From NCBI RefSeq assembly GCF_000150275.1, contig NW_002060944.1:4716123-4780122 (forward strand): a stretch of 64,000 nt of DNA. Reading direction: 5' to 3'. Positions 22,468 to 63,936 of this stretch are shown here, in pieces; the stretch's first letter is position 1; every line of letters begins with the position of its first letter. The translations under genes were made by a program, and so were the position numbers. The stretch comes from Trichoplax adhaerens. Its lineage: Eukaryota; Animalia; Placozoa. A model generated the notes under the pieces. It did not search any database. It saw only the letters and a program-made list of their open reading frames with translations, and was not told the DNA's origin.

Positions 22468-25400
22468 TCAAATAGTAGCTTTACAGACGCTATTTAACAA
22501 TTTTTGTAATTTGCCTTTTTGAGCAGAAATATTGAAACAATCCTTTTCAAGTTTTTTACGATTTTGTTCCGAATTGTATAGTTGTTTAGATAATTTACAA
22601 TTTTCCAAGTATAATTCGGATACTAAGATGTTATTGCGTTCGGTTTTATTCTCAGCTTCAATAATCTAAATTGAACGAATAGGTAGATAATAGAAGCATT
22701 AGGTTGGTCACTGGTAAGGTAAATATTGAACAGGCATATCGATCTAGTTGAGTTAATTAATAGATATTATTAACAAGACTAGTCTTAAACTGTCATACCT
22801 GTGCTCGCATCAAACTGATGTGACTTTCCATTGCATCGCGCGTTTCCTTTAATCTTAGACATAACTCTTCTTTCTCACGGAGTAAGTCACTTTTATCGCG
22901 TAAATGTTTCTCGATTTCGCGTTGGAACTCTTGCCGTTGCATATAACCTCCTGCTGCATAGCTTTCCATTTCTTTCTTTAATTGCAAATAATTGGTTTCC
23001 TTATCTAGCAGCTGTAATGAATGATACGATAATAGATACCCAGTTCAGTACTGATAAAGAGTTATAGTTATCATAGGTAAGTAAATTAAGCAATAGGTTA
23101 TCTAGCTAGACTGATAATTTATATAAAAGCTTGCATGTCATTAGTTGAAAAATATCAGCTGTGGATATCCTACCTTATTTTTTAAAAGCCCTAATTCTTG
23201 CTGTAAAACATCCAGTTGCGCTTTCTCTTCCCGTTCTTTTTGTTGAATTTTCTCCGATAATTGGGTTACATCTAGTCGATGTAATTGCTTCTCGTTATTT
23301 AATTCCTGGACAGCTTGTTGTATCTAACAAAGATAGAATCAATATGATTGTGATTAATAACAATGATAATATCCCATTGCTTATGCTATGATTATGGACA
23401 AATTTATTTAAAAAGATATTTTTCTCTATTAACCTTATTATTGGATTCTTTCATTTCTTTTTCGGATGATTGTAGTTTGTTTTTAAGTAATTCAATTTCA
23501 TTTTTAGATGCTTCTTGTATAGACGAAATTTGTTCCATAGATGATGCGTTTTGTTGCAATCTTTGCTCTAGTATTTGCCTTTGAGAGGTAACTTTAACTA
23601 TTTCCATTCGCAAGGACTGTATAGTAATCTACAGTAATACAATCAAGAGTAATATAGAATTTTTTTATTAATCCATTAATAGTCTTACAGGATCAATTCC
23701 ATTGAAATAATTACTAATTAATCTAGCAATTTACTTACTTCAGACTTGATGATTTTTTCTCTTACTTCAGTTACTTCCTTTTCACTATTTTGATATTTCA
23801 TTGTCAGCCGATCCATTTCCATCTGATATGCAGTTGTTTTTGCTGATTCTTTTTCAAGGCTTTCCTCTTTAGACTAAATAATTGAAGTATTAATTCTTAA
23901 TCGTCTTATTCTACTATTGAGCACGAGTAAAGTTATGGAATAACTAACTATGTAAGCACGGTAATAGATATTACACTATACCTTTTCAATCTCTTTGATG
24001 GTCATTTCGAGACTATCAATATTATCTACCAATAACTTATTTCGTTCAGATAATTGACGAGTTGATTTTTCCCAATTGGCTTTTTCTCTATAAAATTATA
24101 AAATAATTAAAAAAATAATGAAGTCGATATAGAACTATTTACCTAATAGTATACTATATGAATAATATAGTGAACAAATTATATTGCATGAACTAGAACA
24201 TATATATCGATAGATATCGACAATTAACTTACAGATAGTGCTCTTCAATCTTTTCTTGCAATTTTTTGGTACCTTCTTCAGAACTATTACCAACCAATGC
24301 TAATTTCTCTTCAAATAAGGCAAGTTTAGTCTCTAATTCGATATTTTCTTGCTGCATACGATTTAATTCATTTTGCACTTGTGAGCATTGGTTCATTAAT
24401 GATTCACGTTCCGTATGCATAACTCGCATAATTTCAGCTTTATCTGCTTGATGTTCATCTTTCATAGTTTGATTGTCTAGCATTAATTTTTTCTTGTCAA
24501 GATTTAATTGATCGATTGATTTTTGCAGCTCTTGGCTTTGATGTGAGATAGCATTGCTTTTAGCCTTTTCCAATTCATCTTTATCGCGATAATATTGCTC
24601 CATTAATTGTTGTATCTCAGCACGATGTTCTTGTTGCAATAATTTTTTCAATTCATCTTTATCATGTCCATGCTGTTTGCGTAAATCTTCCATTTCTCTT
24701 TTCCATTTGTTCTCTTTCTCTTGTAATAGTTGTTCAAATTTTAATTTCTCTTTATTAATATTATCCATTAATTCTTTTTGGTGTTTCGCTAACTCACTGG
24801 ATTGATTACGTTCACGTTCTAATTTTATTTTCTCATCCAAAGTTTGTTTAAATTTAGCTTCCAATTGGCTCTTTTCTAATTCCAAACTATCTTTTTGCCG
24901 TTTAAACTCTTCATCTAATTTAATTTTTTCATCCGCTAAGACACGGCTTAATTCCTTTAAATCCTCTTCATGTTGTTGCTCTAAATCTTGACGTTTCTTT
25001 TGAAATAAAGCTTCAAATTCTTCACGTATTTTCTTACCATCTTGATTCATTGATTTCTCTAACACCGATTTCTCGTTATTGAAATTTTGCTGTAATTCAT
25101 TAATTTTCGATTCCAATGATTCTTGATGTTCACTTTCTAGTTGTTCTTTTAATCGATTTTTTTCACGGGCAAATCGATTCTCTAATTCAAGGCGTTCTTT
25201 TTCATAATTTGCTATAACGTCCATTTTTTCTTGATTTTTTTCCTCTTCTAATTTACTTTTATCAGATATAAAAATTTCTTCTAACTGGATCTTTTCTTGA
25301 AGATAGTCTTCTTCAAGATCTTTTCTTTCCTTCTCAAAACGTTTCTCCATAGTTTCTTTTTCATCAGCATATGAATCAATAATTTGACTCCTTTCTTGAT

Positions 25401-28400
25401 CGAATTCGTTCTCTAAATTTTCTTTCTCGATCTCGAAATCTTTCCTTTTTTGCATTAATTCTTTCTTATGAGATTTTATTAACTCTTCACTTTCTTTATT
25501 TAATGAAGCAATTTCATTTTCTAATTCCTCAATTTTGCTATTCAGGTCATTAATTAATTGATTGAGCTCTTCGATATGATGTTGTAATTGCTGCATTTCA
25601 TCAGAATTACGACTTCTTTCTCCTGCTAATTTTTTTAGGTCGTCCATTTCACGTGCTAGAGTTTCACGAAGTTTAGCTGTTTCTCGATCATGAGTCTCAT
25701 AAATTTCAATCTTTTCCTTAGTAAATGCATCATTTATTGAATTATACTTTTCTTTCCATTCTTCTACATCATTCTTTAAAGCTTCGACCTCTGTTAAAAT
25801 GGATTCAAGTAGGGATATTACTTACTGTATTCCTACATCATTATAGTGCAATCTATGGATTTCAAATATCTACTGCTGGCTATTTCTATCAGATCGTTGC
25901 TCACTAATGACAGGGCAGTTGTACTCTTGACAACGAATTGATGTTACTATTGATTTAAAAGTTTTCTCGTACATCAGTTCAATTACATAAGTTTGAATTT
26001 GAATGATTGCTACTCAGGGCCAAAACTGCCCATTTGGGTAATACAGCAAGAAATTATTGACTCTATTGATGAGAAAGATCGATTTGACTACCGCACCACA
26101 TAGAAATTATGGTTACAATTTGTATTCTAACGCTGAGATGATTAAAATTAGATCCTTTGCTCACTTTAGACCTTGGTACTCAATTAAGATTGCCGATTAA
26201 GGCAATTTAAATACTAATTAAACTGGATCATCTATCTTGCAATATCCTATCAAATTACATTACAAGAATCTATTCTAGTAATCATGCGAAATTGACGGGA
26301 TAAACTGTTTGTGGTACTTGAATTGTAGTTTGAATTAAACATAGTAGATCTAATATGATCGAAAGTACATATATATATTTACTTTATATATGTTAAACTA
26401 ACATATACATATGTATTTCTTATACAAACATATTGATTTACTTCATATTTATTTATAATTAGCCAAAATTGATTCAATCTATTGTATCGTTGAAGGATAA
26501 TTAACTTACGTCTTTCAGCTGCACTTGGCTCTCGCTCTTTCTTCAATTTCTTCAAGACATCCGATTCCGCGCCAGAACTTGTTTCAGAGCTAGATTCAGA
26601 ATCAGAATCTGATTCGACAGTTCTTCGCTTAACGATTAATGGCTTAGCATAATCGGATAAGACGGAGCCAACACGACCTACGCCTCTTCCTCCACCAACT
26701 CCACGAGGACCACCACGTCGATTAAATGTATTATTCAACTGAGCAATTTGATCCTGATACTTATCACAGCGTGTTGTTAATTCATCGACTTGATCACGTA
26801 ATTCACGATTTTGTTGCTCTAATTCCCGTAATTCTTGTTGAGCAAAACTGCTTTGTTGTTTATTCAGATCTTCACGTTGAGCATCAAATTCAGCCAACTA
26901 AAAGAGCAAAAATGCAAATAAATAGAAATGATCGATTAAGCGATGGTATTAAACGCAATAAAATCGGCTACTGATTAGAGTGATAGCGATGGGGGAATAT
27001 ATGCATTATAACTTGTAGACTTTGTCCTCATCAACATACCTTAGAGGATAACTCTGAAGCTGACTCTAATTCCTTGGTTAATCGAAGGATATTTCGCTGA
27101 GCATCGAGTAATCTGCCTTGCGTTGATGCTAATTCAGCACCTAAACGACTGTTTTCCTACAATGGATGTGATAAAAGGAGATGTTATTCTGCATGTAGGC
27201 TTAACTTGAATCAGGATAAAGGAAAAGTTATAATTATCCTCCAATCCATTATTGTGGATGGTGAGGGATTAAATCGTCTCATTAACCTATCAGTATTCTT
27301 ATGAATAAAAATGGGATAGCCTGATGTTACTCACTCTGGTCAAACTATCCCTGATCTTACAAGTAGAGCAAGAAAAGAGTAAATATGATATACTACTAGC
27401 TCGCATAATTCAAGACTAAAATTTATTGACGCTCATTTATTAAGTGAAGTATTTCATCAAATAATGTTGCTGAAGTGAGAGAGAGAAAGTAATTTAATTT
27501 TACTGCCTAGCTTAATTCAAGGATAAGGATTGTTATGCTCATTTATCGATAGAATTATCGGATTAAACAGCCATTTAGAAGGGAAAGGGGTGTAATTTAA
27601 TCCTACTAAATCGTTTAATTTAAGATTGAAAACACGATTGCTCGTTCTCTTATTCTTTAAAAACATCTAATTAAACCTATCAGCAGCTGCTTAGAAGAGC
27701 AGAAGAGTCATTTAATGCAATTCACTGGACTAATCCATAGCTAAGGATTATTACACTCGATTACGGAATGAAATAATCGAATCAAAGTATCAACAGCCTG
27801 TTCGAAAGAGTAATTTGATGCTAGTAACTAGTTTTAATTCAAACTAAAGGTTTGTCGATTTTCAATCACCTAACCAAGTTACTTATTAAAGAAAGAAAAG
27901 AAGAGAGGGAGAGATAATTGGATGCTATTTAACCATTCTGATACAAAATTAAAAGACTAAATTATTCGGCTGGTTTGTTAGCAGAATCTTTCTAATTTTT
28001 ACTATCTTGTCGTTCTAGCAAAGGCTATTCTTTACCTCTTCTGAGTCGGCTAATTTATCTTTCAAATTTTGCTCCTCATATCTCTGCTGACCAATAGAAT
28101 TTTCCATTTTCTGGATCTGTTTGGTAGTCTGTTGATTCCATTTCTCTCGTTCGACTTCCATCTCCTTATGTAGTGTTTGTAATCGACTTTGGAATTCTCG
28201 TTCGGCATTTCTATTGATTAATCAATTCAAAATTTATTTAGAATCATAAAGCTTGGACTGACTATTATGTATACGATATAATTTTAACAATTAAGTATTA
28301 TACAGCGGATAATACGGACTTTAATATATTTTGATGTGTTCGATCTTGATCAGCGCTTCTTTCTTCTGATTCACGAATTAGCATAGTTTGTTCCTCACCA

Positions 28401-31400
28401 GCTCTTGCTAAATCACCCTTAAGTCGTTCTTTTTCAGCAATGTGTTCCTCAATGGTAGATCTAGAAGTAGTGAATCAATATAATTATATACTGCTCGTAA
28501 ATTCCTTTACAATCTTAGAAATTTACAATACTATTTCGATCGAAGACTGGACTAAAATGACAAGTAAAAGATCATATTAGCACGAGATTATTTTTATGAT
28601 ATCCTTAAAATTAGCATATTACCAACCTAAGGAATCCAACTTCACTTTTATATACACTTAAAATGGCTTGTGTAACAGCTATTGAAGAAAGATTAAAATT
28701 ATTTTATGATGGGAAATTCGACTCCTATTACTATCTTATGAATAAATTTTTTCATATTTTAAAGGGATCATCGAGATAGAATAGACCGATATAAAAAATC
28801 ATATTGGCTTAAACTAACGTGGATCTTGACTCGTTTCAAGAATAATATGTTCTAATGTTTCGGATAGTTGGCGAATACTAATTTTATTATCGGCATCCAT
28901 TTCAAAGCTCTATAATTCATAATTTTCAATTAGTAATTTAAATTTCATGCGTTAAAGGTTATTGAGATTAATTCAAAGGTCTTAAACCTGAATAACTTCT
29001 TGTGCATTAGCTAATCCTTCCTGAGCCAAAATATCACTAACGGCTTCAGCCGGAACATAGCTGCAAGTTATACATTATTTTGATGATCATTAATTGTAAA
29101 CATACAGGAAAATATTGTTTCAGTCGTAACGGAAATTGCAGATTTGATTTTATAATAGAAGCGAGTACTAACCCACTATGGTTAGGATCTAACGAACTGA
29201 AGAGATCAGCAGTTTGATTAAAGGAATAGGGTGTTGGTACTCGACTGGTTTGAGAAGTAAGCTCCTCAGGTCCAAGGCGATTAATTGAAGCACGTCTCTG
29301 CAAAATTATTACAGCATTAAATCGAATTGAATAACGGCTAAATAGATTCTTTTCTTCTTCTAACTGTTATCCTCCAATTACATAATCTATGACTTAAAAA
29401 ATGAAATATTAATTTAAATTATAGACCTTGAGCGATGCCGGTAGACGTAGTGTTTGTGGTGGAGTTCCGGGTAAAGATATCGGAGGAGAATTGGCAAAAG
29501 CGCCTAACTCTTTCACGATGGATAACCCATGTAAAAATTCGTCAAAACTAAGTGTGCCATCTTTATTTTCATCCAGTTCTTCAAAAAGAAAGGATAATTC
29601 CTAGGAGTTGAGAGGTATAAGAAAAGATTAGGATTAATAGGAAGTAGCCTGGAAATATCCTTTCATCTTGAACGGTCGAATAGAATATTAAAATTCTTGA
29701 TTGAAAGTGCGTTGGTATAAATTAACTGTGCCTAGAAATACCTCTTCATTTAAATTTTCCATTCCAATATGTTCGCAAACTGTTTTTAACTCGTGAACGT
29801 CAAGAAAACCTGCTTGACCCACATTGACTTCTTCCAAGATTGCTTTTAATCTTTCCCTTTCCTCTGCTGCTGCGAGTTCATCATCACTTGTGTAAGATCC
29901 TGGCTCGATTCGTGTACTATTTAGCGACATATTCCATTGTTGGTTGGCTGCAGTACTCTATTTCCAATGAAATTACGAACTATTTTACATCAATGCACTA
30001 GAAATTTGGCGCTATTTTAAACCAGAGTCTATTTTGCAGTTGATAACGGCATAAACTAGTCATTATGACGACATTTTAAATTCCTCTAAATTTGGTATAG
30101 AACTCCTACTCCACAAACTTACCGGAGCTGGCGATCCCGATCTTTTACTATCACTGTAGCTATCAAAATCGTTGTCAGAATAAGATGTATCTGCTTCCGA
30201 ATCCGGCCTTGATCTTCTTCCATATCGTTTCGCTCTTGTGCTTAAATGTCGAGTGGTTTCTATATGGATTAATGAAACGCTTAATGAGCCTTACAAAGTC
30301 AATTTACTGAAGGTGTCTGTGAACGATACAGTTAGGTTCTATTTCAAATTAGCCTTCTATAGAAACTTAGGTTACTATAACTATGATCTAGTCTATCATA
30401 GGCCAGTTCAATTCAGTTGGCTAGGGTTATATAGGATCATTTATTACTATGCTTGTGCTATACCATAGATTTATGATCCTATCTTTCAGCTTGATGAGCT
30501 CTTTATGTTATCATGTTATTGTACATGCAAATTCAATCCAATGAACGTTATGCAGAATCATTTGCGTGTATTACTATACTTGTGTTATGTTGTAGATTTA
30601 TAATACCATCTTTCAACTTTATATAAGTTTTTTAAAATTATAATATCCCAAGCGAAGTCTATCCAAATATGAATAAGTATGTATTACTATACTTGTGCTA
30701 CGCTGTAGATTTATAATGTTATCTTTTAGCTTTAGAAGCTTTTTAAAAGTTTAAAATCACACGCAAATTCTGTCCAACTATGAGTAAGTGTTTATACGTA
30801 TTACTATACATGGGGTATGCTGTAGATTATAATACCATCTTTCAGCCTTATAAGCTTTTTAAAGTATAATATCACTTGCGAATTCTATCCGATTAGCCAT
30901 ATGGAGAAAATCAATCGCTGTGCTTGTAATTAAGCAGATCAATGGTAGTAATCTCTACTACTATATTGCATATCTTGTAAATATCCGTATAGTCAAAATC
31001 AAAACAATCAAGAATTTTACGGTAATATTCATATTTACTCTCATCCTAATAAACAGTTTGGATTGACAATAGTCTACTTTGGATTACTTTAATAATAGTA
31101 TTGCAAAGGAGATTCCATTAATTTAATGATTTATTTATTTAGGCATAGTGTACAGACAATAAAACAGATAGCAATAATAACTTCTGTTGGACTTGATAGA
31201 CTTACGTGATTCCGATTCGCTTTCACTAGTATCTGTTTCAGTAGCGCTTGCAACGCGAGATAAAACTTCTACAAATCCACTTTTAAATTGCTCGAAAGAA
31301 ATCTAAATATAATATCAGTAAAAGAAATTAGCTAAATGTATGATAGTAATTAATAAAATTAGTAAATTGTGGAAATGAAAGAGACTAAAACTGTAAAAAT

Positions 31401-32756
31401 CAGCGACAATCAAGAAATCATAATCAGGTTGAGAATTTACTAAGGGATACAATTAATCGATATAGAATTTTGAAGAAATCATAATCAGGTTAAGAATTAA
31501 CTATTGCAAACAATTGATCGATATAGAATTCTTTACGTAATTGTCTAAGGAAGTAGGCAAATGATAATAATCAAACTTTAAAATTTGGGAATGTTAGAAG
31601 CGAAAGAGACTCAATAGTAAAATCTGCGACTTTAATATTATTAAGAACTATGGAAGGCGATCAATAGATATAAAGTTCTTTTACTTCTTGCCACGGCTAC
31701 TCAAGAATGGGCATATATTTGATAACAAATGAAAGCCTTTTGATGTGAACATTAAATATGCAACAACAGATCAAAGTCTTACTAGGTTCGCTAATTTTAC
31801 TATTGTTGACGACTAGATATGAAAAGCGATGGATAAGTATAAAATTCTTTTGCTTTTCACCGAGGTTACTCGAGAAAGGGTAGTCAATTTTATGAGCTAA
31901 GAAAGTTTCTGATCTAAATATTAAATAGGCCACAACAGATATAAGGCATATTCTGTTTGCTATTCTTGATCATATAAAGAACTAATTATGAAAGGCAACG
32001 GATAAATATAAGATTCTTTTACTTCTCACAACGGCCACTCAAGAAAGAGCAATAATTTTAATGACAAAATGAAAATTTCTGATTTTCTTCCAACACTCAA
32101 TATACTACAATACGTATAAGCTCCGTTTTGTTATACAAATTATATACGTCGAATTTTTAAGCTATCTTGAGGCTGTATCATGATCAATTTGATGGAAAAA
32201 TGAACACTTTTGATTTCACTACCAACGCTTAATGTGCTATAAATTATAATGGATAGAAGCTCTATTATTCTAATTAAGTCGAATTTTTAAGTTCTTATGA
32301 CGACGATGTATTATGATCAATTTCGTGAAAAAAATGAACACTAGATGTACTGTAATGGGTATAAATTCTGCCATCTTGATTAAGCCGACTTTTTAAGCTA
32401 TATTAGAGCTGTATTATGATATATTTCATGGAAAAAATAAGCACTTTTGAATATACTTTAGGGATTCAATATGCTATAACAAGTATGAAATCGGCTTAAT
32501 CTTTCAAGTTATTATTTTTCCTATTTTGAAGCTATATCTTACCAAGAACAGCCGAAAATCAACAATGATAATGGATACTTACATGACCAGAACTACCTCG
32601 AGGCACAAGGACATTAACAATTTGCGGTGCTTGTTCGTCTAGTTGCAGTTTGTGGCATAGCGATATCAATTCTTCTTTCGTTAAAAAGCCATCGCCATCA
32701 TGATCACAGGTCATAAAGACTTCGTGTAACTGGGCTTCATAAGCTTCTTCATCCAT
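22468..32756 (-). CDS. NIN: Ninein / ninein-like centrosomal dynein adaptor (EF-hand head + long coiled coil), 20 coding exons, ~1504 aa
   Basis: Exons (minus strand): 32583-32756, 31206-31302, 30123-30259, 29742-29957, 29427-29600, 29173-29297, 28988-29060, 28819-28909, 28627-28678, 28320-28460, 28036-28210, 27040-27156, 26510-26897, 24233-25790, 23982-24087, 23739-23873, 23434-23628, 23174-23323, 22799-23011, 22468-22665; all phase-consistent. N-terminus MDEEAYEAQLHEVFMTCDHDGDGFLTKEELISLCHKLQL..ISFEQFK, motif KRYGRRSRP, EF loop DENKDGTLSFDEF and C-terminal LVSELYLENCKL all resemble vertebrate NIN/NINL as recalled. Confidence 0.9.
30444..30895. repeat. Degenerate ~115-bp tandem repeat in ninein intron 2
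   Basis: GTATTACTATAC(T/A)TG..TGTAGATT(T)ATAAT..ATCTTT(C/T)A(A/G)C.. recurs at 30568, 30681 and 30798, with a partial copy at about 30444. Confidence 0.8.
31380..32480. repeat. Degenerate local duplications in ninein intron 1
   Basis: AAGAAATCATAATCAGGTT(G/A)AGAATT..ACAATT(A/G)ATCGATATAGAATT occurs twice (about 31412 and 31474). TTCTTTT(A/G)CTT..ACGGC(T/C)ACTCAAGAA-like blocks at about 31677, 31845, 32013. GAATTTTTAAG..TGTAT(C/T)ATGATCAATTT-like blocks at about 32151, 32281, 32388. Confidence 0.65.
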
Positions 32757-37499: not shown

Positions 37500-39050
37500 A
37501 TCCATCAATTACCAATTCTAACTATTAATGACATATTTGTTGTTTATACATATGTGGTCTCTATATGAAAACAATCTTTTAGGCTTTTCATATTCTATTT
37601 ACTACGTATATTTTTAAATACTGCCACAACTACTCTTGCGACACAAGAAACAACACACTGCTTATAATAAACTTTGCTTTAATCCGCAGAACTACTTCCC
37701 TAGCCTACAGTATAGTAACTGGAATCCTTGCGAAGTACTAACTCGCTTAACACAATACGCGTATACGATATATAACTATCATACAACTTAGACTTAACCT
37801 GAATCACTTTTTATTGATCACACTCCTTCCAATATACTCTTTCAGTGGTTATAAACATATTTCGATAACAAACATCTTGTTACGATTGAATTATGAAATA
37901 CGGACATTCGAGGTAATAAACAATTTCATACGTAAATCTACTTCGACCATAAGCCCTGTCAAGCTCCTATGTTCTCGATACTTACTTGTACCATAATAAC
38001 TTAGGTTATTACTAACAATAACAATTCCTAAAGTAGTGGTTCATACTTCTTAAAAGTTCAAAACAAACTGTTATCATAAACTACACATCCATATCAAAGC
38101 TATTTTGATGACTGTGACAATACATAGCTCGAAAGAGAAGGAAATAATATGCGTTTCATGTCCTATTAAAATTTACATAATTCTAATCATACATATGTGG
38201 CCAATACTTACTCATATTTTTATATATACGTGTATATGTTATTACTACTTAATAACAAGTTGTTAATGACAACTCTCCTTTGGACTTTCCATTCTCTATT
38301 TATTACGCATATTTTAAAATGCGTAGCTCGAATGGAAAGAAAATTATATATATTTCATATGCTCTTTAGCCTTACCCAACTCTAACCATGAATGACATAT
38401 TTGTTCTTTATACATAAGTGATCAATACTTAATAACAAGTTGTTATGAAAATACTCTTTTGAACTTTTCATACTCTATTCATTACGAATATTTTTAAATG
38501 CATAGTTTAACTGTGAATGACATGTTTGCTATTTATACATATATATGTATTATATTTTAAAATGCGTAGCTGGTATGGATAGAGAATTATATATATATTA
38601 CATGTGCTATTTAACTTTACCCAATTCTAATCGTGAATGATTTATTTATTATTTATACATATATGATCAGTACTTAATTACAAGTTGCTATGAAAACTTC
38701 CTTTTGTGCTTTTCATTCTCTATTTATTACGTATATTTTAAAATGCATAATTTGAATGGAAGAAAGTAATACACGATTCATATGCTATGCTTTACTTTGG
38801 CTTTACATAATTCCATCGATGAATGACATATTTGTTGTTTATACCTACGTGTGTTCAGTGCTTACTCATGCATATGTTATGGTCAACGTCGATAATCATA
38901 ATATTCCTTTAAACTTTTCAATCTCTATTTATTATATTTTAAAAAGCATAGTTCGAATGAAAAGATTACTAGCACTACATCAATTATTTACTCGTCAATG
39001 CAATATAAGATAATTTGATCCATAATTACCAACTCTAGCTCTGAATAGCA
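37500..39050. repeat. Degenerate tandem repeat cluster
   Basis: ATGACATATTTGTT(G/C)TTTATAC..TACTTAAT(A/T)ACAAGTTG..CTTTTCAT..CTCTATTTATTACG..TATTTTAAAATGC(A/G)TAG recurs about five times between 38190 and 39050, with a further copy at about 37527-37620. Confidence 0.75.
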
Positions 39051-42000
39051 TGACTACCATTCAGGCCTGATAAACTGAGAATAAATTTCTCTTTGTCACG
39101 ATACTTGTACTGTAACGAGTATTATTACATACAGTATGTAGATTCTTAGTAAATATAAAACTAATTCATTTTCGGGTAAGGGCAAATAAATTAGTTAGAT
39201 ATCTAATCCATAAGAGAGTTTAAAGATCAAGTCGTGTTTTGATCATGGTTAATCTCGTGTTATATGCGTGCTCTAACCCATCTTTATCAACGATTTTGTC
39301 GCCGGGCCAATACAAGAAGCTTTACGAGGACTACCTTGTCAAGAATTTATTTATAGTATATGAATGAATATAATACTCATATTTCTAAGAATTTGCATTA
39401 TCAATGAATGATATGTTATGTTAATTATTTTGATCGATTAGTGCTAATGAAATGGTCCTATTACAATAATTGTTAACATCTAAACATAGGTTTGTTGCTC
39501 TGTATCCATATATATTCCAATTTCTACTTGATTGTTCAATCATTATTTATGATATTAACTTTCTGATTGCTCCTAGCTGTGATGTTCGTTGAATAACTTG
39601 TGAAAAATTGTTATTTCTGTCTAAATTTCAATATACTAGATGGTAATCTTGCCTTTTATGATGTGCTTAGAATATTTTATGCACGTCACTAAGCAAGATT
39701 ACATTCATGCGTAGGCATTAAATAGCAATATCACGTGCACCATCAAATACTTGGCATTTATTGGAAATTAGAGTAATAAAGTTTCGTTACCTTGCATATC
39801 AAAACGTATTCCAATTTCTAAAATATCTGGTAAGGATGTCATTGCTTTCGTAAGCTGCGTTACGAATATCAGAGTCGGCTAGCTAATATCAGAAAAATGT
39901 TTGTCGTAAAAAGTAGCTATTACATCGATCTAAGCTTGGAATCTTACATATTCTAATTAAGCTATAAAAACTTGAAAGCATTTAAATATCCACAATAATG
40001 TCGTAGCTGTATGGGCATCGTTCAAATTAATTTAAACTTAATTTATTAGAGTTGAAAAAAAGGCTAGGTCCAACTAAAATAATTTAAGTATTAAGATTAT
40101 CGGTATTAGATAAGGTAGAATTTTTGTTATTGATTTAAATCTAAAATGCGCTCTATTTTCTAAAGTAAAATGTTATCTTATGGAGTTGGCTAATGGTATT
40201 ATTACAAATTTTGATACCAATATTGATCGAGAATGGACGTAGAATAATACCTACTGTTTTAGAAATATTAAAAATATTTAATCCAATTTTCAATTACGAT
40301 ATCAGGTATAAAATCATTTTATGAATTTCGTCCCAAAATAATCGATGTGAAAGGGTCAATTCTATTGATTGGAAATTGACCTTATAAAGTTTGGCATTTC
40401 ATCTGCATCAAATTCTAATCATGCTATCGGCGTTGGGTTGATTCATGAATTTAATTGTAGATAAATTAACGTCATAACACTAGAATAAATAAATTAAAAT
40501 TGCGTTTCCATAAATTGATTAGTTTATAATTGCATTAAAATTTTACTATTGTTTTTAATTACAAAGCGTAATAATTATAGAAATCAAAGAATGTAATTTA
40601 CGTAATCTTACTTATAAATTTTCATCTAAGCTCATGTACGTTAAAACTTACGATCGTATTAATGCAGTTGTTGTAAAGCCTACACGCATTTTCTTAATAA
40701 TTTTCGTAAAATATTTATCTCTCAGTCAATAAAAGATGGCAATAAATACAGTATTGCTTTTAGTTCACTAGTTACTAATGTAATTGAGACATAAGTTCTT
40801 TATTTTATCTAAGAAATGATCATATTGCTATTTCAGTTCTATCGCACTTTAAATTTTTGATCCCGTATCTGATAGCACATTTCCGTTCAGTAAATAGTGT
40901 TTAAGCTTATTTAGATACCACCAATATTTCCTTATTACATGCTAGATAAGATTCGCTGCTTAATTAAATTAAAGCTAGATTTAATTCTTTTCCAATCGTT
41001 TTTTCGTACGCGAATAGCGATATAGAGAATACTATCTAATTATAGTTCTAATCACGTTAAGGCATTAATTGTAGCTCATATCGTAAATACTGACGTAGAT
41101 TTAATAAAATTAGGATAACAAAAAATCACTACTTGATTTGTTAAAAAATTAAATCATTTAGTATTGCTTATCAATTTACTTAGCTATTGATTACATAAAT
41201 TGCCGACGGTATGTTATGATTATATTATCGGCATAGTAACGGTTTTCTTGTAACTAGACAAAAATATAAGTCTCGGCTTTGATTGCTGTTAATCTATGCC
41301 TATAGCTATATCAAACTCACGTTTTATTCATCAAAGCTACTAACTATGATAACAGGCGGGGTCTCTGTCATCATTATCGTTGTATTTCTGTCATTAACGC
41401 ATTAGTCTTGCAAATAAAAGTAGAAAAATCCACCTACTTAAGCTATTGATAATTTTATCATTATTTTAGTAAGGTTTTCTGTCTATCAAATAATATAGTT
41501 TTATTATTTTGAAGCAAAAATAATCCATAGTAATACTTTTGAATCGATTAACTGTACGCAGTGCTATTTCCTAGAAAGATGCGATCAAACTATTTATAGC
41601 CCAGAGACAGAAGGATTAGACCGAATTGTTTCCATACTTATAATCATAATTAATTAGAATCAATAGGCTCACATATTATATAACAGAATAGGAAATAACA
41701 TCGCTCTCAGGACAGAAAGTAACAGCATTTTAATAAATAATAATCCTACTATTAGTTTATATAGACACTTAGCTATAGCAGTGCCTCATAGCCAATTTAT
41801 GAATACCGTTGATAGATTGATTTGTTTCTGCTTTAGGAAATAAAGAGTTAGAGCTACAATTTATCAATTGTTTTCCATATGCTATTGGTTACAATGTCAG
41901 TAAATAGTAAGGAGTTTGGGAAAAGAAAAACTTATTACGAGAAAGTCTAGAGAGGATAATAACACTGACATCAGTAATCTGAAAAAAGATTGCACGTTAG

Positions 42001-43935
42001 CTGTCAGGAATTAAGAATTGTTTATTTAATTATTCAGACGTAGCTCATACAGATTTCAATATATGGAACGCAAAATAAGTCTCGATATATATAATTATAA
42101 TAAGCAATAGTGATAATAAGAATGAGACTTGTATAGCTATTAATTCCGCTAATAAGCATCACTGTTTCAATCTGATATGAAGTTACGATCTAGTTAAAGT
42201 TCCTTGGCAAAATAATCATGAATTATCGTACCAAGCTAATAACTACAATATGATGATAAGAGCAACAATAGGAGCTAGGGAGTAAATATATCAAATAATC
42301 TCGTCTTATGAAATATCAGATCGTATGGGGCAGTTCATGTTATAAACACAGAATAATTCTACCGTTTCTTTAAATTTCTGATTAAAATATCGGTAATTTT
42401 ATCAATTACAAACAGGATAATGATGAAATCTAACTTATAATAATTAAAAAATATAACTAAATTTAAAGGTTTAGCTGTAATTGTTAAAGATAGATACGAG
42501 TAGGTATTTGCAAATCTTTCGTGTTTTAATATCGAAGAAAAGTTCAAGAACGGTCAGCTATAATCATTTGTTGATATTTATAATTTACTTTTCGGGTCAA
42601 TGAACTCAGAAAACACTAAATTACTCAGTTGTATAATTTTAATACAATCTTGGGCGTTTTAACTCCTTTCTTGCAATTAAATTTCTATTTGCTATCTAGA
42701 TTAGAGATAATTTATATACGAATATAAAATTTAAAGCGGAGAACGCCTTTCATTAAGATTAGAATTTTAGTTACCCTGCATGCAAGCAAGTAATGGTTTG
42801 TTGGACTAAAATTAAAAGCTAATAAGATCTTTTAGTCAAATAATTGTTTAACTGTTTACTTGTGGCATTCATACTCGTATTCTAAACTTGAGTGATCATA
42901 TTGATCAGTATCACAAGTTACGACTACTATGCCGTATAGTAACAAGATAGCTAAATTTGGCTTAATAAGCTTGAGGGAAAGTCTGGGTTGAATAGAAAGC
43001 AGATTTTATACCTATATAGTACTGCTGCTTTAAAATTAGACCATATTAGCTAAAAATAATTTTAAAGTAATAGTAAACCTATTTTAAAATTCTACATATT
43101 GTAAAATAGGCTTCAAAATCGCGCAAATAGTTAAAAATGTGATTTTTTTAGTAAAGATAAGTAAGGCAATAATTATACTGTAGTGGATCTGAACTTTATT
43201 CCGTTGCTTAGTAAGACATGATTGTGGTGACATATTTCGAAATAGGCAATAAATCTTAGTGAGATTAGTTTGCATGCTCAATAGTGGTACACTTTTAACC
43301 TTTACTGTATTATTTTGTGCAGAGAGAAATAATAATTGATTAACATCAATTATCAAATAAATCAAAATAATAGATTATATAATTGAATGCCGCTAATGAA
43401 ACAGCATTCATGACTATATTTGATGATCTAGATAAGCTAGGAAAGATTAATATAACTTAGTAAAATTCTTCATTAATCATAAATAGCGTCTACTATACAA
43501 TACCATGACAACTCAAGCTATCAATCATTAAAGCTATAGAAATAGATTAATTATGTGTAATGATTAATGATTTATGTATATTTATAAGCGTGATCTAGGA
43601 TAGCTTACATCAAAAGAGTAATCTAACATTGAATTATTGAATTCTATGCAGATGCAGTTCAGGGCTATACGTGCAGGATAAAAAACTATTTTTATTTTAT
43701 TTTCATGTTTATGGGCTACTGCTTACCAAAGATGAGCATATCCATATCTTTTCGATGCTGCTTACTTAATTTAACATGGACGTAAGATAAGATGTGAAAT
43801 GATGTAGTCTGAAGTTCGTTTTCGACTTAATTTAGCTTAAATTTGTAGCCTTAATTAAATTTGATAGCCAAATTCATATGCCGCACAGTCGAATATGGAA
43901 AAGAATTATAAAGTAGAATGAAGACAATAATTGTT

Positions 43936-45898
43936 TTAGACAAGTTGGATTGCATCTAATCCTGACAGAAATTCTTGAAAACTTAATAATCCGTCATGGT
44001 TGCTATCCAATTCTTCAAAGAGTATACGAAAATTCTATTGACAGAAATATAAATATTTGTATTAATGAACATTTATCTTGGGATCACGATTATATTGATT
44101 AATGGAATAAATCATAAATTTTTACTTTAGTTATTCATATTAAGAGAGTGTTAGAAGATAAAAAAATTGATCATAAAAGCAAACTACTGAACATATTAGA
44201 AAATGAAGGCCAACTATATAGTCAAGGGGGTTGATAAAACGCATACTACAATAATTTGGCATTCAGTTCGTTATCTACTAGTTCGTTTACGAGAAGAAAT
44301 TTGAAGTTAGTTTTAATTTCTTCTTTTATTGATTTCATTATATACTCAGCACAATACTAAAGTGGAATAGTAACTGGTCTTTGCTACCCTCCGTAACATC
44401 TTATTTATTAACGATTACTTAATATCTCGTCTACATGATTAAATTACCTCATTGATGTCTTTCATACCGAAGCGTTGGCATACATCACGAAATTCATTTA
44501 GCTCTAAGCATTGACTTTCATCCGATTTAATTTGTAACCAAACACCTCTTAGAACGTCATGTGCTTGAATTTTTGTTATATTGTCGTCCGAGTAAATCAA
44601 AATTTCGGAGTCATTGTCGTCATCAGATTCAAAGTTCGTCTGAGTGCTGCTGATTGAGACTCTGCTAGAACTTCCTCTCTATTAATAAATAATTATAGAG
44701 TAACATTACTTGTTATTATCAATCCAGGGAAAGATTATATTGCGATATTTAAAATAACTCAATCTTATTTTTACGTTGCACTAAAGATATTGATTTTGTA
44801 GCAATTTATTATAAATAGCATTAAATTTAGGGACCTAAATTTATTCAATTCGAAATGTATCGAGCTTGTACTTATTGAATTAAGGATTTCTATATTATAT
44901 TTGTATATATAAAATGATATGTACGGGTTATACAGTTTAAGTTCATAAGTTTATTGGCTGCTGACTGTCTTTACAGCAATCACTCACCAAGTAGACAGAA
45001 GGACATAGACTATGTCGTCTTGTCAAGGCTATAAGAAGCAATAATCAAGGATGGGAATAATTAATCATCTGTGCTAACAGAATTTTAAATTCTTATATCG
45101 AACACATCCTATCTTTAATATGCTAATAAGAATATATACGATTATATCTATAGATTTCAAAACCTTTATCCAATAACTCCTTAGTATGGAAATAAGTAAT
45201 CATCTGCACTTATAGTATTTTGAATTTTTACATGAAATCTATCCTATCTTTAACATACTAATAAGAATATATTCGTATATATCCATATATATTTTACAAC
45301 ATCTAAATAATAACTCTCTAACTATGGAATTAAGTAATCATCTGCAGTTACAGAATTTTAGATTCTTACGCAGAATCTCTCTTATCTTTAACATTCTAAT
45401 AATAGACATATATACTTGTATACTCGTTTATCTATCTATTTCATAGCATCAAAATGATAACTCCTTACCCGAGATTGAATCAGTGCTACTAAATTCACTG
45501 CATGTACTACATGTAACAGACTGATCATCATTATGAAAGTACTTATGCATTAGTACGCTGACAAAGGCATCCTGAAATTGTTCATATGTAATCTAGCGAA
45601 TTATAGAGAGTAAGATATGTCAGTTCTCAAACTGCTGTGAGCTGAAACAGTTTAATTTTCACTTAAAATATATATTTAACTAAGCGTGAGTATGATGTTT
45701 AGTCGAAAATTATAAACGAACTTGCTGATCCGCTGTCGAGAATAATAGACGATCTTCCAATTGAGGCCATTGCTGATTGACATCTAGCATTTCGCATAAA
45801 TGTTGGCATTCTTCAAGACTGATTAATCCATCGTGATCCCGGTCACATTTAGAGAATAAATCTTCAAGCATGATTTCTTTTTCTTCTGTTTCAGTCAT
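43936..45898 (-). CDS. Truncated ninein paralog encoding only the N-terminal EF-hand head (5 exons, 223 aa)
   Basis: Exons 45722-45898 (MTETEEKEIMLEDLFSKCDRDHDGLISLEECQHLCEMLDV..), 45469-45592 (ITYEQFQDAFVSVL..), 44988-45028 (LTRRHSLCPSVYL), 44448-44678 (..LRGVWLQIKSDESQCLELNEFRDVCQRFGMKDINE), 43936-44034 (NFRILFEELDSNHDGLLSFQEFLSGLDAIQLV*). Open frame, canonical GT-AG, and the same intron positions and phases (0,1,0,0) as ninein exons 1-5. Confidence 0.85.
45055..45468. repeat. Three ~136-bp tandem copies filling intron 2 of the truncated ninein paralog
   Basis: TAATCATCTG..AG(A/T)ATTTT..ATC(C/T)TATCTTTAA(T/C)AT.CTAATAA.. at 45062, 45197 and 45334, each ending in ATAACTC(C/T)... Confidence 0.8.
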
Positions 45899-48565
45899 AT
45901 TGTTAAAATTCTTCAGCAAATAAAGACAAATTAATAATAAATATAATCAATTCCCTTTTTTATCGTACGTAGCATCTTTTTTGATGGTGTATACTGCAAT
46001 AGACCATACATGTTCTGATATAATATTTACATAAGTTAATCATGCGCTGGATAAAAAAGCCAAATGTAATTAAACTAGTAGTAATAATAAAACAATCAAC
46101 AAGGTTATCATCACTGCGATAAAGATTATCTTCGTTAAAAACTATCTACTGTATTATTGCTAAAATTAATAATTAGGGATATTAGCCTATATTCTGTTAC
46201 ATAATTATTAATGCAGCCTGATAATAAAATTGCTATAGTAATATTTATGCATGTCATAGAAATAAGGAGATATTGCACGTATTGATAACCGGTAACTTTG
46301 ATTGGTGATATGGTAATTGGTCAATTACTCGTATAATAGATTGATCTAACCATACTTAAATTAAGTTAGAGTAGAAATTTATTCAAATTTAAAGGTTATA
46401 AAATTGAAAATAGAAGACTATTTTATTTTAATCCTTCACAAATCTTAATCCTATTGCGTCAGTGTCATCTATTTATGATCAAAGATGTTAGTTATTGATA
46501 CATAAAGAACAAATAATAAAATTTATAATGATTTAAATTATCAACAATAATATTTCTATAAAATCTTGCCCTTATTCAATAACATTCCTTAGTAAATATA
46601 ATATAATTTGACTCTTTCCATAACTATTAAATGCCAAGCATGTTACTGGAATGAGAGCTTTTGAGCACCTTTCTTATACTAAAATACTGCATTTTACTTT
46701 AATTTCTTCTGAATTATAGCAATAAGTATAGTAGTCAAGATTGTATAACATGAAAAAGGATCACTATCAACCATTATTTGTATTGTATAAAATTTGTATA
46801 CATACGAATAGACATTTTTTTTATAATATTAGACGTTGAAACTTGTATCATTATGTGAATATGACGATAGTTTTACGTTATCTTTCCTAATTTAAAGTGA
46901 TCCACTTTTAACACTAAGTCTATCTTAATGTTTTAGTATTTTAGCTAGAGTTTCAGCTACAAATGTACTAATATAAGATACGAATGTGGTTCGTAATGCT
47001 TGCGATAGCAGCCAATGATACCACTAGTATAAATCGGTGCTAGATTTTTCTTTAATTTTTCGTTTTGTAATGTTTAAATGCTGTTCTTTATCACTACAGT
47101 AACCGTTATTAATCCTACCTATATCAATATGCAACCTGTAATTTAAATTACGATTTTTGTTGCTTGATATGATTTCGTTCATTAAATGTGTATAGATACT
47201 ATACTTTTCAATAAATTGCCAGCTACAATAATGCTGCTTTGTAACAATAACTAGTAGTTAAAATTTTCGCTAAAGTGTAAGTGATTGAATTAATGCCAGC
47301 AGTATGAATATTTTAGATAATATTATAGATATGAATTACAGCTAAAACTTGATAGTTAGACGATTGAAAATTTTCATTCGGTAATAAACATAACCGTATA
47401 AACTGAGATAGGAGGAACAAAGCTTAGTGGTCAAGTATGTACGTGATCAAGTACGTACTTTCGTTCTTAAATAGTCCCTTGTAGGATAGTTTAAAGCACT
47501 TCAAAGCTTGAGTACATTAGTATTTCTTTTCAATCAACAACAGAGATAAAAAAGTAATAGAATAGATTAAATAGTGAGTTAATCCATTTTATAGTTACGT
47601 AGTTTGTTTAAGTAGAATTCGATCGTTGAGTCTTGAGAGTAGTATTAATTACAAAAGAATTGCTCCATAGTTATTACGTTCGCTAAGGATGAGGGAATTG
47701 AACTTATTATTGTAATATAGCAAAATATCAGCTCGTTATTGAATAAGCAGGGAATGAAATGAAGATACAATCTCGCACGTAAGTAATTTCGATATTTGAT
47801 GAGATTGCACTGATTAAAAATCGATTATTTGGCACTATTGCGGTACGTTTATAAATCATTGATAAAATTATATTACTTATTACCAAATTCGAAGTATTTA
47901 ACATGTAAATTATGTTGTGGGAAGAAATGAAAACTTTGATAATGTCAACGGAATAAGTGATAAAAATTATAATGAAAAAAATGAGAATTTTAGTAAATTA
48001 GAATTAGAATTTATTCTAACGAAAATCCTGTTTAATTACTTACATTTACCCTTAGACACTAGGCCAATATTGAAAAATTTCAACCCTAAAAATGGACACG
48101 TCTAGTTGTGATTTGATTTGGCAGGCGCTTGGATTTAATGAAATCAGGGATATGAAATTGAATTTATATTGTGTTGTATAGTGGTCAACAAAGCGTCGAG
48201 GCTTAAACGAGGCGTCTAATGACATGCAGCAATTGACGAATTGAGATTAGATATGGACTTTTTCTTCATCTCCTTATATGTAAGCTACGGTACTTGTTGA
48301 CTCTAATCGTGACTTATCGTAGTTTCGCTTAAACGCAATTATTGATTTGGTTTGATAATAGCTTTTGATTAATATGTTCGCCTAATCAATCAAGAATAGA
48401 TTGAATGTCAACAGACGTAATCGATCAAGAGAAATCAATGACCGATTGTCTATAACATACTGTATTGTGTACATTGGACTGCCCATCGCGAGTAAAATGC
48501 TAGATATGATCTCATGCATTTTATTTATTTTTTTCCACTAGTGATTCACTAATCCCTAACGGCGA

Positions 48566-52867: not shown

Positions 52868-57086
<4,219 letters not shown>

Positions 57087-59698: not shown

Positions 59699-62600
59699 TT
59701 AGTAATAAGCTCCACCTAATGACAGTGGCGGTCTTTTTTGACGATTAAAACTGGATGTTCTAGAATGACTTCCGCCTTGATTTTGGAAACCAATAGGGAA
59801 TGGTTGCTGATATATGTCCTGGGGCTTAGTATTAGTTTCATTCTATGAAAACGAGTATGACATTCTATTTACTATACATTCTCATTATGAAATAAACTTA
59901 GCATATAACTTAATAACATTTGTGATGTCTGTACCTGATATTCAGATTGTCTGGGCGTCGATTGCACCGAGTCGCTCACCCTAGAGTATTTTTACGGTGA
60001 AAGTACCCGCATAACACTATTAGTTATAAACTAATGCAAATAGAACCAGTAGATAATAGCTGCATATCTTACCCGGTATCGGATGCAGAAAATCCAAGAT
60101 CGCTAACGTTACTCTCCGTGCCATAGGAAGAGGTTAAATCATGAGAATATCTATTTTGCATATCCGGAAGATTTGAACTGAACGGCTGAGATGTAGACAT
60201 ATTTGCAGCAGCATATCCACCAAGTCTACCTTGGGCATATGAATCGTGTGTTCCAGTATGTGCTGTAACATCAACACCTTGAATGAGAACATAAATAGAT
60301 TTTACATTGAAAGTATCGTTGAAAGCTTGATAACGCTTGAATGTTACCTTGTTGCGAACTATCATACAATTGACCCGATGGATCTTGTGCAATATTCCTG
60401 TTTTGGTTACCTATGAGATGATGCAGTCGCTTACTTAAATTAAAGTTCAATAACAAAAATCATATAACTAGATTTTCATATTTTATTATATACCATGCAC
60501 ATTGGATTCGTACGGTTCTTGGCGATTCATTGCTTGCTGCCTATTTTCACGATTAGATCGCATTTCTGCAGTTTGATATCTTCCATGGTCATTGTCAGAG
60601 TGTTCTTGCAACCCTTCATTAGAGTTATTATTATTACTTGAACTCGTAAATGGATCTGATACGTCATCTTGATCTTAAAAAAGTTCATTCCAAATTACGA
60701 GCCTTAAAATAAAAATACATACACGTACATCTATGGTAGCTTAAAATCTACATCATGCGTTTGAACATACTAGCTGTTGGAACGAAAAATTGTCCTGTTG
60801 CTTTAGCTGGAGTTGTATTATTTTGTACAGGATTGAGGAAGTTTGGAGGAAGAATTGTCTTTTGGCCTGAGGTTGTTTCACTTTTTTTTCCGCCGAAAAC
60901 ATCGACATATTGGCTTCGACCACCTGATGATCAATGGATGAAGTCAATAGCGTCCAATTGAAGAGGTTATGAGTTAACAATCTTAATTTCGTATACACAG
61001 TAAGGCTAAAAAATTTACCCATTTTCCCACCGCGCCCTTTAAAGATAGAATAACTGTTAGTAGCTGAAGCCCCGGCAGTGGATGTTGTCGTAGATTCCTG
61101 TTGCTGGGAAAGCGGTTGCATAGGATTGTTTGCAGAATTATTCATCGGCTGCTGATATGTTGGGATGCCTACGTCAACAGTTGGTCGATAATTAGCTATT
61201 TTTTATACATAGATTGCATTGAGTACGTGATTGTAAAATGTTGCAAATACTCACTAGGTTGAGCTGTGGAAGGCTTGGTTAATTGTGTATCTGATGGGGG
61301 CGGAGCAGCAGCTTTTGTTGTCTTATACGTCCAAATAATTAACAATCATCAAATTATAATCTAGCCTAACTAACTGCAGATAAAGGCTACTGTAATTCTA
61401 AGTCGCAGTTTTTTCTTACCTCTTCTGGATTATCGTTATCAACCCACTTTTTTAAATTTTCATCATAGTAAATCTGTTAACATGTAAAAATAGCGCATAG
61501 ATAAAAATTTAACTAACAAGATCTAATCGTAGCAAAACGTCATAATATTAATGCTCGAAAACATACAGTTGGCTTTCTGTCATCGGGCAAATGCATTTCA
61601 TTTTTTCCTCTAAAGATCATACTACTGACGGTAGATAACCAACCCTTTGATAGCAACAATTACGAAAAGTCATTGATTCCATATTAGAATAAGACTTTAG
61701 CAATTGAAATGTTTAATGCAAACCTTTTGCTTAACTTTCCTTCCAGGTGTTTTAGCCGGTGAATCTTGACTCTTTTTGGCCATATCTTTTTATATGAAAG
61801 ATATATATATATATATATACTAGGTTAGCGATTTTTAATATACCTATTGCTATAAGTAGTAATTATTACGCTACCATCACTTGGTGCTTTCACTGTGTCC
61901 CTATTGGGTTGAAACTTATCGACGATATTAGGACCTTGTTGATTTTCCTAACATTAAAAATAAATTTCTTTAAATAACAGCTGTTAATTCTTCTAATTCT
62001 AACTATATGATGCAGTATTAATTGATATATCTCTACTTCTGGCTTATAGGTATTTGCACGGGGAACTGTGGTCTTGCTGCTAGCAGGTTCATACATTGCA
62101 GCGCTGTTGCCCGCAGGTTCATATATTGGATTTAATGGGATATTTCCACCAGTAGGTTGGCTTTGTGAAGTACTATTGGGATTATAAAATAATTTAGGAC
62201 TGTCTTGTCTTTGATGACTGGTTGGAATTGTTGGGCTGTACAATCCAGGCTTATTTTCAGGTTGTGCACGGTTATACAATCCAGAATTATTTTCAGATTG
62301 TGTCGGGGTATATAATCCAGGTTTGTTTTCATGTTGCCTATTAATTTCTGATTCATCAAAGGTAAACTGATGAACAGATTTATTTGATTCAGCTGGTGTG
62401 TGCACAAGAGACAGATTGCCGCCTCCAGAATAAGATTGTATGGGTGAAGCTGGATTTTGATACGTGTAGTCATCCTCCACTTTTGGAGCTATCACATCAT
62501 TGTTATCTGTTGATGTACTGTTATTAAAACGATATAAATTATTATTATAGTCAAGGTCGGTCAATGAGTGAAGATTAGCTAGCCATTCCGGTTCATCTTC

Positions 62601-63936
62601 GTCTTCATTGCCACTATCTTCAGGATTGAAATATGTAGCACGAGAAGCGAAATTTGCTACACATTTAATAAATGATTTAGAATATAGTTTTGGATTAGAA
62701 TGAATAGTGTAAGCCAAGGATTCTAAGTACTGTAAGGCCTCGTCCTTCCCGCCAAGCTCGCTTAAAAGTGCTGCGTACATAAATTTATACGGCTGAAATT
62801 TTGGGAATGCGTCACCAGGTCTTTGTAACGAGCGAATATACTCACATATTTCAGTACGATGAATATCGACAATATCTAAATACTGTAATGATTTACTTGC
62901 AGAATTTTGACCAACTAATATAAAGTCCTTTTTTTCACTATCAAAACGGCCAGGGATTACTCCTGCAATCAGGTAACATAACTGTCCAGCGAATATATCA
63001 CCATTTTGCATCAACTGATTTCCAAGAGAAATTATATTGTCTTTATCAAACTTCGAATTAGATGTTGTATTAGACAATAACATTGCCAAATGCGATTTCC
63101 AATTTGTATTTATGGTACGTTTATTAGTTATGGCTGTTGGTAGTTGACCATCTAATACTTGGTATAGTGTTAGTAAAGTATCTCCTTCCATCATCGACAG
63201 AAAGAACTTGTTAATAACCATTTTGTACATTCGAGAATCTAATCTATTGGATAATATCATAGCATGGCCCCATAAACCATTACCGATTGCAATTTCTAAC
63301 GCTTCCCTTTTTTTCCCTTGTAATAGTAATTGCCTAAATTCTTTTTCAATAGCTTGCATATTAAATGAAACTTGCGGAGAACTTTCTAGTTCTGCTTCAT
63401 CGTGGCACTCAGATTCGAAATCATCATTAGTGGCCAATTTATTACTACTTTCATTACATAACTGCTCATCGTTTAACAGTAGTTCAGAAATATCAGTATT
63501 TAGTATTGTTCCATTTTGGCGAATTCCCATCAGTAGATACTTCCACAGTAAACGCGATGACGATGTTTCCATTCTATCAGTCGTATTAGCAATTTTAGTC
63601 TCAATATAACTTATTATATCACGTTTGTGTGTATCGTCACACATTAGAGGCCCAGGAAAATCTTTGATATCATGCTGCAGCTTCTGTTCCGATACGCTAT
63701 TCTGAAATTAGTATATAGAGTGACGTAATGATAGGTATCAGTATTTCCTTAAATTTCTAATATGAATATGTATAATAGGTATAATAGTGAACGCATTCTA
63801 AGGCTTACCTGTAGCTGAGATATAGTTACCATGTTAGGGTTACTGGCTGAGGTCATAACCACTACCCCACCAAAGCTAAAATTACATCTAACATGAGGTG
63901 CAACGTATAACGGTGGAGGTTTCTGATCTTCTTCAT
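59699..63936 (-). CDS. SEC16: SEC16 (ER exit site scaffold), 5'-partial; gene continues beyond the window end
   Basis: Exons include 63809-63936 (PHVRCNFSFGG), 62037-63701 (FPGPL; central conserved domain LLWKYL..RQNG..DISELLL, FRQLLLQGKKREALEIA..GLWGHAMIL, WKSHLAMLLSN, FQPYKFMYA..LSELG), 61875-61947, 61724-61785, 61567-61644 and 61420-61473 (GW..KNEMHLPDDRKPT/IYYDENLKKWVD), 61255-61321, 61019-61195, 60771-60923 (GRSQYVDVF). Further small exons were not all delimited; the last exon ends GGAYY* with TAA at 59699-59701. Confidence 0.92.

Follow-up and report, generated by a model that had tools for sequence, protein, structure and literature searches.

Introduction

The main control over dynein lies in the choice of the coiled-coil adaptor that captures the helix of its light intermediate chain (LIC), and the known layers of regulation comprise adaptor autoinhibition, LIS1 and phosphorylation. 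Binding of the adaptors to the LIC helix is mutually exclusive, and activation of the motor requires the coiled coil (2026 preprint). The architecture of ninein (NIN), as described in a 2026 preprint, consists of two EF-hand pairs, a further EF-like part and a coiled coil. Residues 1-87 of human NIN are sufficient for binding to the LIC1 helix, with a dissociation constant (KD) of 5-12 µM and independently of Ca2+ (Lee et al. 2020, PMC7655957). Only the first EF-hand pair of human NIN establishes this interaction, while the second EF region does not, and the pair binds no calcium (PMC7655957). In CRACR2a the binding to LIC is Ca2+-dependent through one canonical loop, and in cells, dynein is sequestered and the Golgi fragmented by soluble KASH5 that lacks the membrane anchor but still has its coiled coil. 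Here we describe a gene of Trichoplax adhaerens that encodes only the EF-hand head of a ninein-like protein, hereafter the head-only paralog, which is located close to a ninein-like neighbour (the parent) on contig NW_002060944.1, within positions 4,716,123 to 4,780,122. The whole 64,000-nucleotide stretch that was analysed is referred to as the window, and all coordinates are those of the window. The paralog is spliced, polyadenylated and conserved in a diverged relative, and its product is a candidate competitor for the LIC helix.

Results

The head-only paralog is a stand-alone gene

The head-only paralog is a genuine stand-alone protein-coding gene of six exons, five of them coding, with a 5' exon and a poly(A) site of its own (Table 1). 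The coding frame comprises 223 codons distributed over five minus-strand exons (E1 to E5), with GT..AG borders at all introns and intron phases of 0, 1, 0 and 0. As the GC content of the window is ~30%, such a frame over five correctly phased exons is far from chance. Transcription was followed in RNA contigs from four runs, belonging to four studies with two organism labels, which were placed on positions 42000-47900; of the words sampled from the stretch, ~30-44% occur in the runs, a share that fits exons alone. The four predicted joints are all present in spliced contigs, each as CT..AC on the plus strand, two of them in every run and the other two in three of the four, and a single contig of 1597 nucleotides (run X13) covers all five coding exons. 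The coding sequence displays no insertion, deletion or stop in any of the four runs. No joint or loose end leads from E4 or E5 to elsewhere in the contigs of these runs, in which rare isoforms may be hidden. A listed RNA difference at 43953 replaces Ala by Thr in the C-terminal tail, and a second, unlisted difference is found in exon 4 in three runs.

The 3' end of the transcript is defined by a contig of run X10 with 23 untemplated T ahead of 43176 on the plus strand, which represent the poly(A) tail of a minus-strand RNA. The location of this tail just past an AATAAA signal sets the length of the 3' untranslated region (UTR) given in Table 1. At the 5' end, contigs from all four runs extend past 45910 and match 48044-48073 exactly, the longest loose end measuring 231 nucleotides. 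This exact match, combined with the AG and GT borders, points to a further non-coding 5' exon, joined through an AG acceptor at 45911-45912, 12 nucleotides ahead of the ATG, after removal of a long leader intron. An in-frame TAG at 48059-48061 in the 5' exon, 9 codons ahead of the ATG when the frame is read across the leader junction, makes the ATG at 45898 the first possible start in that frame and rules out a coding extension upstream of it.

At least two further ATGs (48267-48269 and 48223-48225, minus strand) precede the main start within the 5' exon, both out of the main frame; they open reading frames of 17 codons and of 57 codons (48052-48225), respectively, which may regulate translation. 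Contigs of runs X6 and X10 (depth 8-51) are located inside the 5'-UTR intron at 46307-47900, where the DNA is single-copy and holds no long open reading frame (ORF), and this transcription could represent intron retention, an alternative leader or a non-coding RNA of its own. Most of intron 2 of the paralog consists of a 135-nucleotide tandem repeat (45054-45402; 2.6 copies, 77% match), and this intron is retained or read through in contigs of three runs (at low depth in X6 and X8).

An earlier note, made from the letters of the window, had placed the five coding exons and the 223-residue product exactly as they are observed here, and all of its four predicted junctions occur in RNA. Its expectation of a poly(A) site near 43.9 kb proved wrong, the actual site being at 43176, and its count of five exons stands for the coding part of the gene while overlooking the sixth, non-coding 5' exon that ends at 48044.

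Table 1 Features of the head-only paralog and of its ninein-like neighbour, in window coordinates. Joints between exons are those found in RNA contigs.
Feature	Position	Strand	Details
Non-coding 5' exon	48044-48274	minus	at least 231 nt, the upstream end being a minimum; donor GT 48042-48043
5'-UTR intron	45911-48043	minus	2133 nt; inferred from loose end at 45910, match at 48044 and GT..AG ends
Exon carrying E1	45722-45910	minus	12-nt leader ahead of the ATG; joint 45592/45722 in 3 RNA runs
Coding E1	45722-45898	minus	177 nt, 59 codons; ATG 45896-45898; EF-hand 1 with canonical 12-residue loop
Coding E2	45469-45592	minus	124 nt, ends in phase 1; joints 45028/45469 and 45592/45722, each in 3 of 4 runs
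Coding micro-exon E3	44988-45028	minus	41 nt; basic RRHS motif
Coding E4	44448-44678	minus	231 nt, 77 codons; joints 44678/44988 and 44034/44448 in all 4 runs
Coding E5	43936-44034	minus	99 nt, 32 codons; canonical EF-hand 4; TAA 43936-43938
Last exon	43176-44034	minus	E5 and 760-nt 3' UTR up to poly(A) site 43176
AATAAA poly(A) signal	43195-43200	minus	19 nt ahead of the cleavage site
Neighbour head exons 1-5	32583-32756, 31206-31302, 30123-30259, 29742-29957, 29427-29600	minus	model
Neighbour coiled-coil ORFs	26379-26897, 24229-25647	minus	downstream of the head exons

The encoded protein comprises two EF-hand pairs

The 223-residue product consists of two EF-hand pairs, each combining one canonical Ca2+ loop with one degenerate loop. 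The 12-residue loops encoded by E1 and E5 have the canonical arrangement announced in the earlier note: oxygen ligands occupy positions 1, 3, 5 and 9, position 6 is Gly, position 8 is hydrophobic and position 12 is Glu. Both exceed the Pfam EF-hand_1 cut-off of 25.4 bits (PF00036 / PF13499 superfamily; 27.4 bits for E1 and 28.6 bits for E5). EF-hand 2, which lies across the E1/E2 junction, and EF-hand 3, at the end of E4, miss the loop pattern and constitute degenerate partners as in the parent. E2 encodes the exiting helix of EF-hand 2 and then the beginning of a Ser-rich linker, while E4 encodes an acidic, Ser-rich linker portion followed by EF-hand 3. The linker between the pairs extends over ~80 residues, is rich in Ser and Asp, looks disordered and bears conserved basic motifs of phospho-type. 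Among solved structures only calmodulins matched E1 (phmmer, 33.5 bits).

The two pairs and the linker take up the 223 residues and leave no space for a coiled coil. The protein ends a few residues past EF-hand 4 and does not contain the pseudo-EF pair, the coiled coil, the heavy-chain-binding site or the Spindly motif. Since the defining coiled coil is absent, the paralog is neither ninein nor an activating adaptor. In the parent, the EF1 and EF4 loops have the full set of calcium ligands, unlike the first EF-hand pair of human NIN (PMC7655957), and on the basis of these loops the ninein of this lineage may be calcium-sensitive.

Probable origin from the neighbouring ninein-like gene

The ATG of the neighbour (32756) is located on the same strand 11.2 kb from the stop codon of the paralog, in line with the ~11 kb that had been estimated. 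Its predicted exon model follows frame continuity and splice consensus, and the acceptor of exon 4 was shifted 10 nucleotides upstream for the frame. The neighbour encodes two EF-hand pairs, followed by additional EF-like exons and finally by a coiled coil, in agreement with the NIN architecture. From this architecture and from its motifs we take it to be a probable ninein. A search with the parent coiled-coil exon (472 residues) found nothing, and nothing meaningful among solved structures, while the ESM Atlas returned generic EF-hand clusters with no ninein name for parent exon 4.

The phases 0, 1, 0 and 0 are common to the paralog and to the modelled head of the neighbour, and introns 1 and 4 are at the same alignment positions; the proposal that the paralog exons mirror ninein exons 1-5 is borne out in the neighbour model for the phases and for these two positions. 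All protein comparisons were made exon by exon, and both EF-hand pairs straddle exon junctions. Identity to the neighbour is 38% over 48 residues in E1 (BLASTP expect value 1e-10), 25% over 48 residues in E4 (1e-8) and 65% over 26 residues in E5 (1e-10). E2 gave no BLAST match to the neighbour, although a similar helix opens both exons. In the 105.6 Mb genome E1 matches only the paralog and neighbour loci. From the adjacency, the matching phases and the exon-wise similarity, we infer that a partial tandem duplication of the ninein-like neighbour, covering its exons 1 to 5, gave rise to the paralog.

Introns 1 and 2 of the parent (~30.4-32.5 kb) look repetitive by eye, and the repeat finder gave only a 61-nucleotide repeat at 31412-31530. 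The 10-kb spacer between paralog and parent contains a 245-nucleotide tandem repeat at 38309-38753 (1.8 copies, 84% match), and no gene was recognised there. Elsewhere in the window, and judged by eye only, an exon ORF at 53830-54126 (plus strand) carries a motif reminiscent of pyridoxal-phosphate enzymes of the cysteine-synthase / cystathionine-beta-synthase type, and an ORF of 584 residues at 61890-63644 (minus strand) resembles a conserved domain of Sec16 type with a low-complexity tail behind it.

An intact ortholog in a diverged relative is under purifying selection

A phmmer search of the whole library with exon 4 identified one true relative, an exon ORF of 83 residues with 74% identity; the other two matches, repeat proteins with only a short word in common, were rejected as relatives. 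A word-indexed search with exon 1 recovered the same relative alone. The contigs of this relative derive from a marine-biofilm metagenome, sample SAMN08714533 (PMC6355793). One of them (L003, 2223 nucleotides) contains the complete orthologous gene, with exons of 177, 124, 41, 234 and 99 nucleotides that equal those of the paralog except for one codon in exon 4 (234 vs 231 nucleotides). GT/AG is present at all borders and an AG acceptor lies 8 nucleotides ahead of the ATG. The position of the stop and the final residues are the same as in the paralog, although the stop codon itself differs.

Selection was estimated as the ratio of nonsynonymous to synonymous substitution rates (dN/dS), from Nei-Gojobori counts per exon summed over 222 codons, one split codon being dropped. 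The two proteins are identical at 183 of 222 residues; the proportion of synonymous differences (pS) is 0.706, which is saturated, and that of nonsynonymous differences (pN) is 0.094, resulting in a dN/dS of ~0.05 with a bootstrap upper bound of 0.09. Alignment of the two species by blastn is limited to the exons, the short intron 1 and a few exon-flanking bases, the long introns being unalignable. Conservation is highest in E5 (31/32 residues), in the RRHS-bearing micro-exon E3 (12/13) and at key positions of the EF-hands. In both EF1 and EF4 the relative retains the Ca2+ ligands at positions 1, 3, 5 and 12 and the Gly at position 6, and it also retains the hydrophobic helix positions of EF-hand pair 1, bar a Met10 to Leu replacement that remains hydrophobic. 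In the same sample, parent exon 4 is identical at 53 of 62 residues with a dN/dS of 0.08. The similar values argue that the paralog is constrained almost as strongly as ninein. Judged by these comparisons, the duplication took place before the two lineages separated, and strong purifying selection has since maintained the head-only form in at least these two diverged lineages, both probably placozoans.

Next to 29742-29957, a 536-nucleotide metagenome contig (L007) of the relative has no phase-0 AG acceptor ahead of parent exon 4; therefore the exon 3/4 junction of the parent may differ between species, or the exon model may be imperfect.

The RNA contigs agree with the earlier description of a frame with no frameshift or internal stop that ends in TAA shortly after the last EF-hand, and the relative keeps this stop position. 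The same note had made its case depend on three points, and spliced transcripts are present, dN/dS is not near 1 and the relative carries no inactivating mutations. Its central claim is upheld to this extent: the locus holds an intact stand-alone head-only derivative of the ninein-like neighbour, which is spliced and polyadenylated and has a conserved stop and C-terminus.

Discussion

Proposed function and alternatives

The paralog represents an evolutionary experiment that isolates the EF-hand head of ninein, kept intact beyond synonymous saturation. Our preferred reading, held tentatively and with chances that we put somewhat short of even, is that the free ninein head is a candidate decoy or tuner that competes for the LIC helix of dynein. 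The head would occupy the LIC helix and, as it has no coiled coil to bridge dynein and dynactin, would hold the helix with the motor not activated. Occupancy of this kind would result in competition with the activating adaptors, among them ninein. Calcium and phosphorylation could modulate this competition through the conserved Ca2+ ligands and through the basic Ser motifs in the linker, respectively, and the possible tuning by Ca2+ would rest solely on the canonical loops of this lineage. The genome has a single dynein LIC (DLIC) gene, whose C-terminal exon displays the L..FF..L helix motif. A more far-reaching proposal is that placozoans possess a selected natural inhibitor or tuner of dynein, a Ca2+- and phosphorylation-dependent LIC cap that sets how much dynein is available to adaptors; this we regard as unlikely. 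The evolutionary part of the decoy interpretation is supported, and its functional part is plausible.

Several points weigh against a decoy for the LIC helix. The identity of the parent as ninein is confirmed by no named database match. According to Lee et al. (2020, PMC7655957), EF-hand pairs that bind LIC are set apart from those that do not by no particular residues, so that sequence cannot decide whether the paralog binds LIC. The micromolar affinity implies that a decoy would need high abundance, and translation may be held back by the two ATGs that precede the start in the leader. Finally, the similarity of E1 to calmodulin (33.5 bits, phmmer) is close to that with parent exon 1 (37 bits, BLASTP), and the cleft could therefore have a new target.

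This last point leads to the alternative ranked next after the decoy, a neofunctionalised, calmodulin-like calcium sensor or buffer with a target unrelated to dynein, which we consider rather unlikely. It would account for the canonical and conserved Ca2+ loops of EF1 and EF4, whereas the human NIN pair binds no calcium, and also for the nearly equal scores of E1, the deep divergence from the parent (25-38% in E1 and E4) and the conserved motifs that the linker has of its own. The parent loops are canonical as well, however, so that Ca2+ binding is probably ancestral here and gives no sign of a new role, and paralog and parent share a hydrophobic pattern in the exiting helix of EF2. Docking of the gamma-tubulin complex has been assigned to the N-terminal region of ninein, and the paralog might instead act as a competitor or co-factor for such other partners of the head, or for ninein itself, at microtubule-anchoring sites. 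Both EF-hand pairs are kept, together with a conserved linker motif related to that of the parent, and since human NIN requires no more than its first pair to bind LIC, the conservation of 31/32 residues in E5 suggests an additional function; we nevertheless judge this possibility improbable.

The two loci could also form one large ninein unit in which the paralog serves as an alternative head cassette, the ~48.1 kb 5' exon being used by both forms and spliced either to the paralog exons, ending at 43176, or to ninein exon 1, or with paralog exon 4 spliced to ninein exon 5. Both genes are on the same strand, and the AG acceptor 6 nucleotides ahead of the ninein exon 1 ATG implies that a leader exon of ninein lies somewhere upstream. 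This arrangement is given a low probability, as exon 4 joins exon 5 only, with no loose ends at 44448 or 44034 in the four runs (where rare isoforms may hide), the transcript has its own poly(A) tail and the relative keeps the stop position and the C-terminus. A pseudogene that is still transcribed, or a duplicate in decay whose protein has no function, would fit the strong divergence from the parent and the upstream ATGs of the leader. This reading is rejected, being left with almost no probability by the 223 open codons at 30% GC, by the intact ortholog with the same stop position and by the dN/dS of ~0.05 alongside saturated synonymous sites and unalignable long introns.

If the paralog does bind the LIC helix, it would provide a natural competitor for the study of adaptor competition, in the form of a ninein head that probably binds calcium, and would show early-branching animals tuning a single dynein. 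A natural tuner of dynein would amount to a layer of motor regulation undescribed in any animal. If the target is another one, the paralog would be a clean case of a scaffold domain turned into an independent calcium sensor. In both cases the gene merits annotation, as a single one of its exons is visible in ORF-based views.

Comparison with known systems

The literature search returned no paper on a head-only ninein or on ninein in Trichoplax, no natural example of a truncated paralog among dynein adaptors and no natural free LIC-binding module; to our knowledge no such free module has been described. The closest systems are NIN and NINL, with which the paralog shares two N-terminal EF-hand pairs in the same order; its phases, two of its junctions and a related linker motif are common with the adjacent ninein-like gene. 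In contrast to NIN and NINL, the paralog does not possess the pseudo-EF pair, the coiled coil, the heavy-chain site, the Spindly motif or the centrosome-targeting tail, and it differs from human NIN in the full Ca2+ ligand sets of EF1 and EF4. CRACR2a, Rab45, RAB11FIP3 and KASH5 resemble it through an EF-hand pair as the LIC-binding fold, a role that in the paralog is proposed, and the Ca2+ dependence of CRACR2a is the behaviour proposed for the paralog as well. These adaptors all activate dynein and possess both a coiled coil and a cargo module, whereas the paralog has neither, and the relation in sequence is limited to the EF-hand fold as far as it has been shown.

MicroProteins are truncated-paralog inhibitors, exemplified by Id among the helix-loop-helix (HLH) factors and by LITTLE ZIPPER in plants. 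Similarly to these, and to engineered dominant-negative fragments of adaptors, the paralog keeps the interaction domain of its parent without the effector domain and could titrate the partner. It is larger than a microProtein, with 223 residues and two domains, and its competition is only proposed. Calmodulin-like proteins also contain four EF-hands in two pairs, and the best structure matches of E1 are calmodulins. In the paralog, however, two of the four loops are canonical and a linker of ~80 residues rich in Ser and Asp replaces the short central helix, while the gene structure and location point to an ancestry in ninein.

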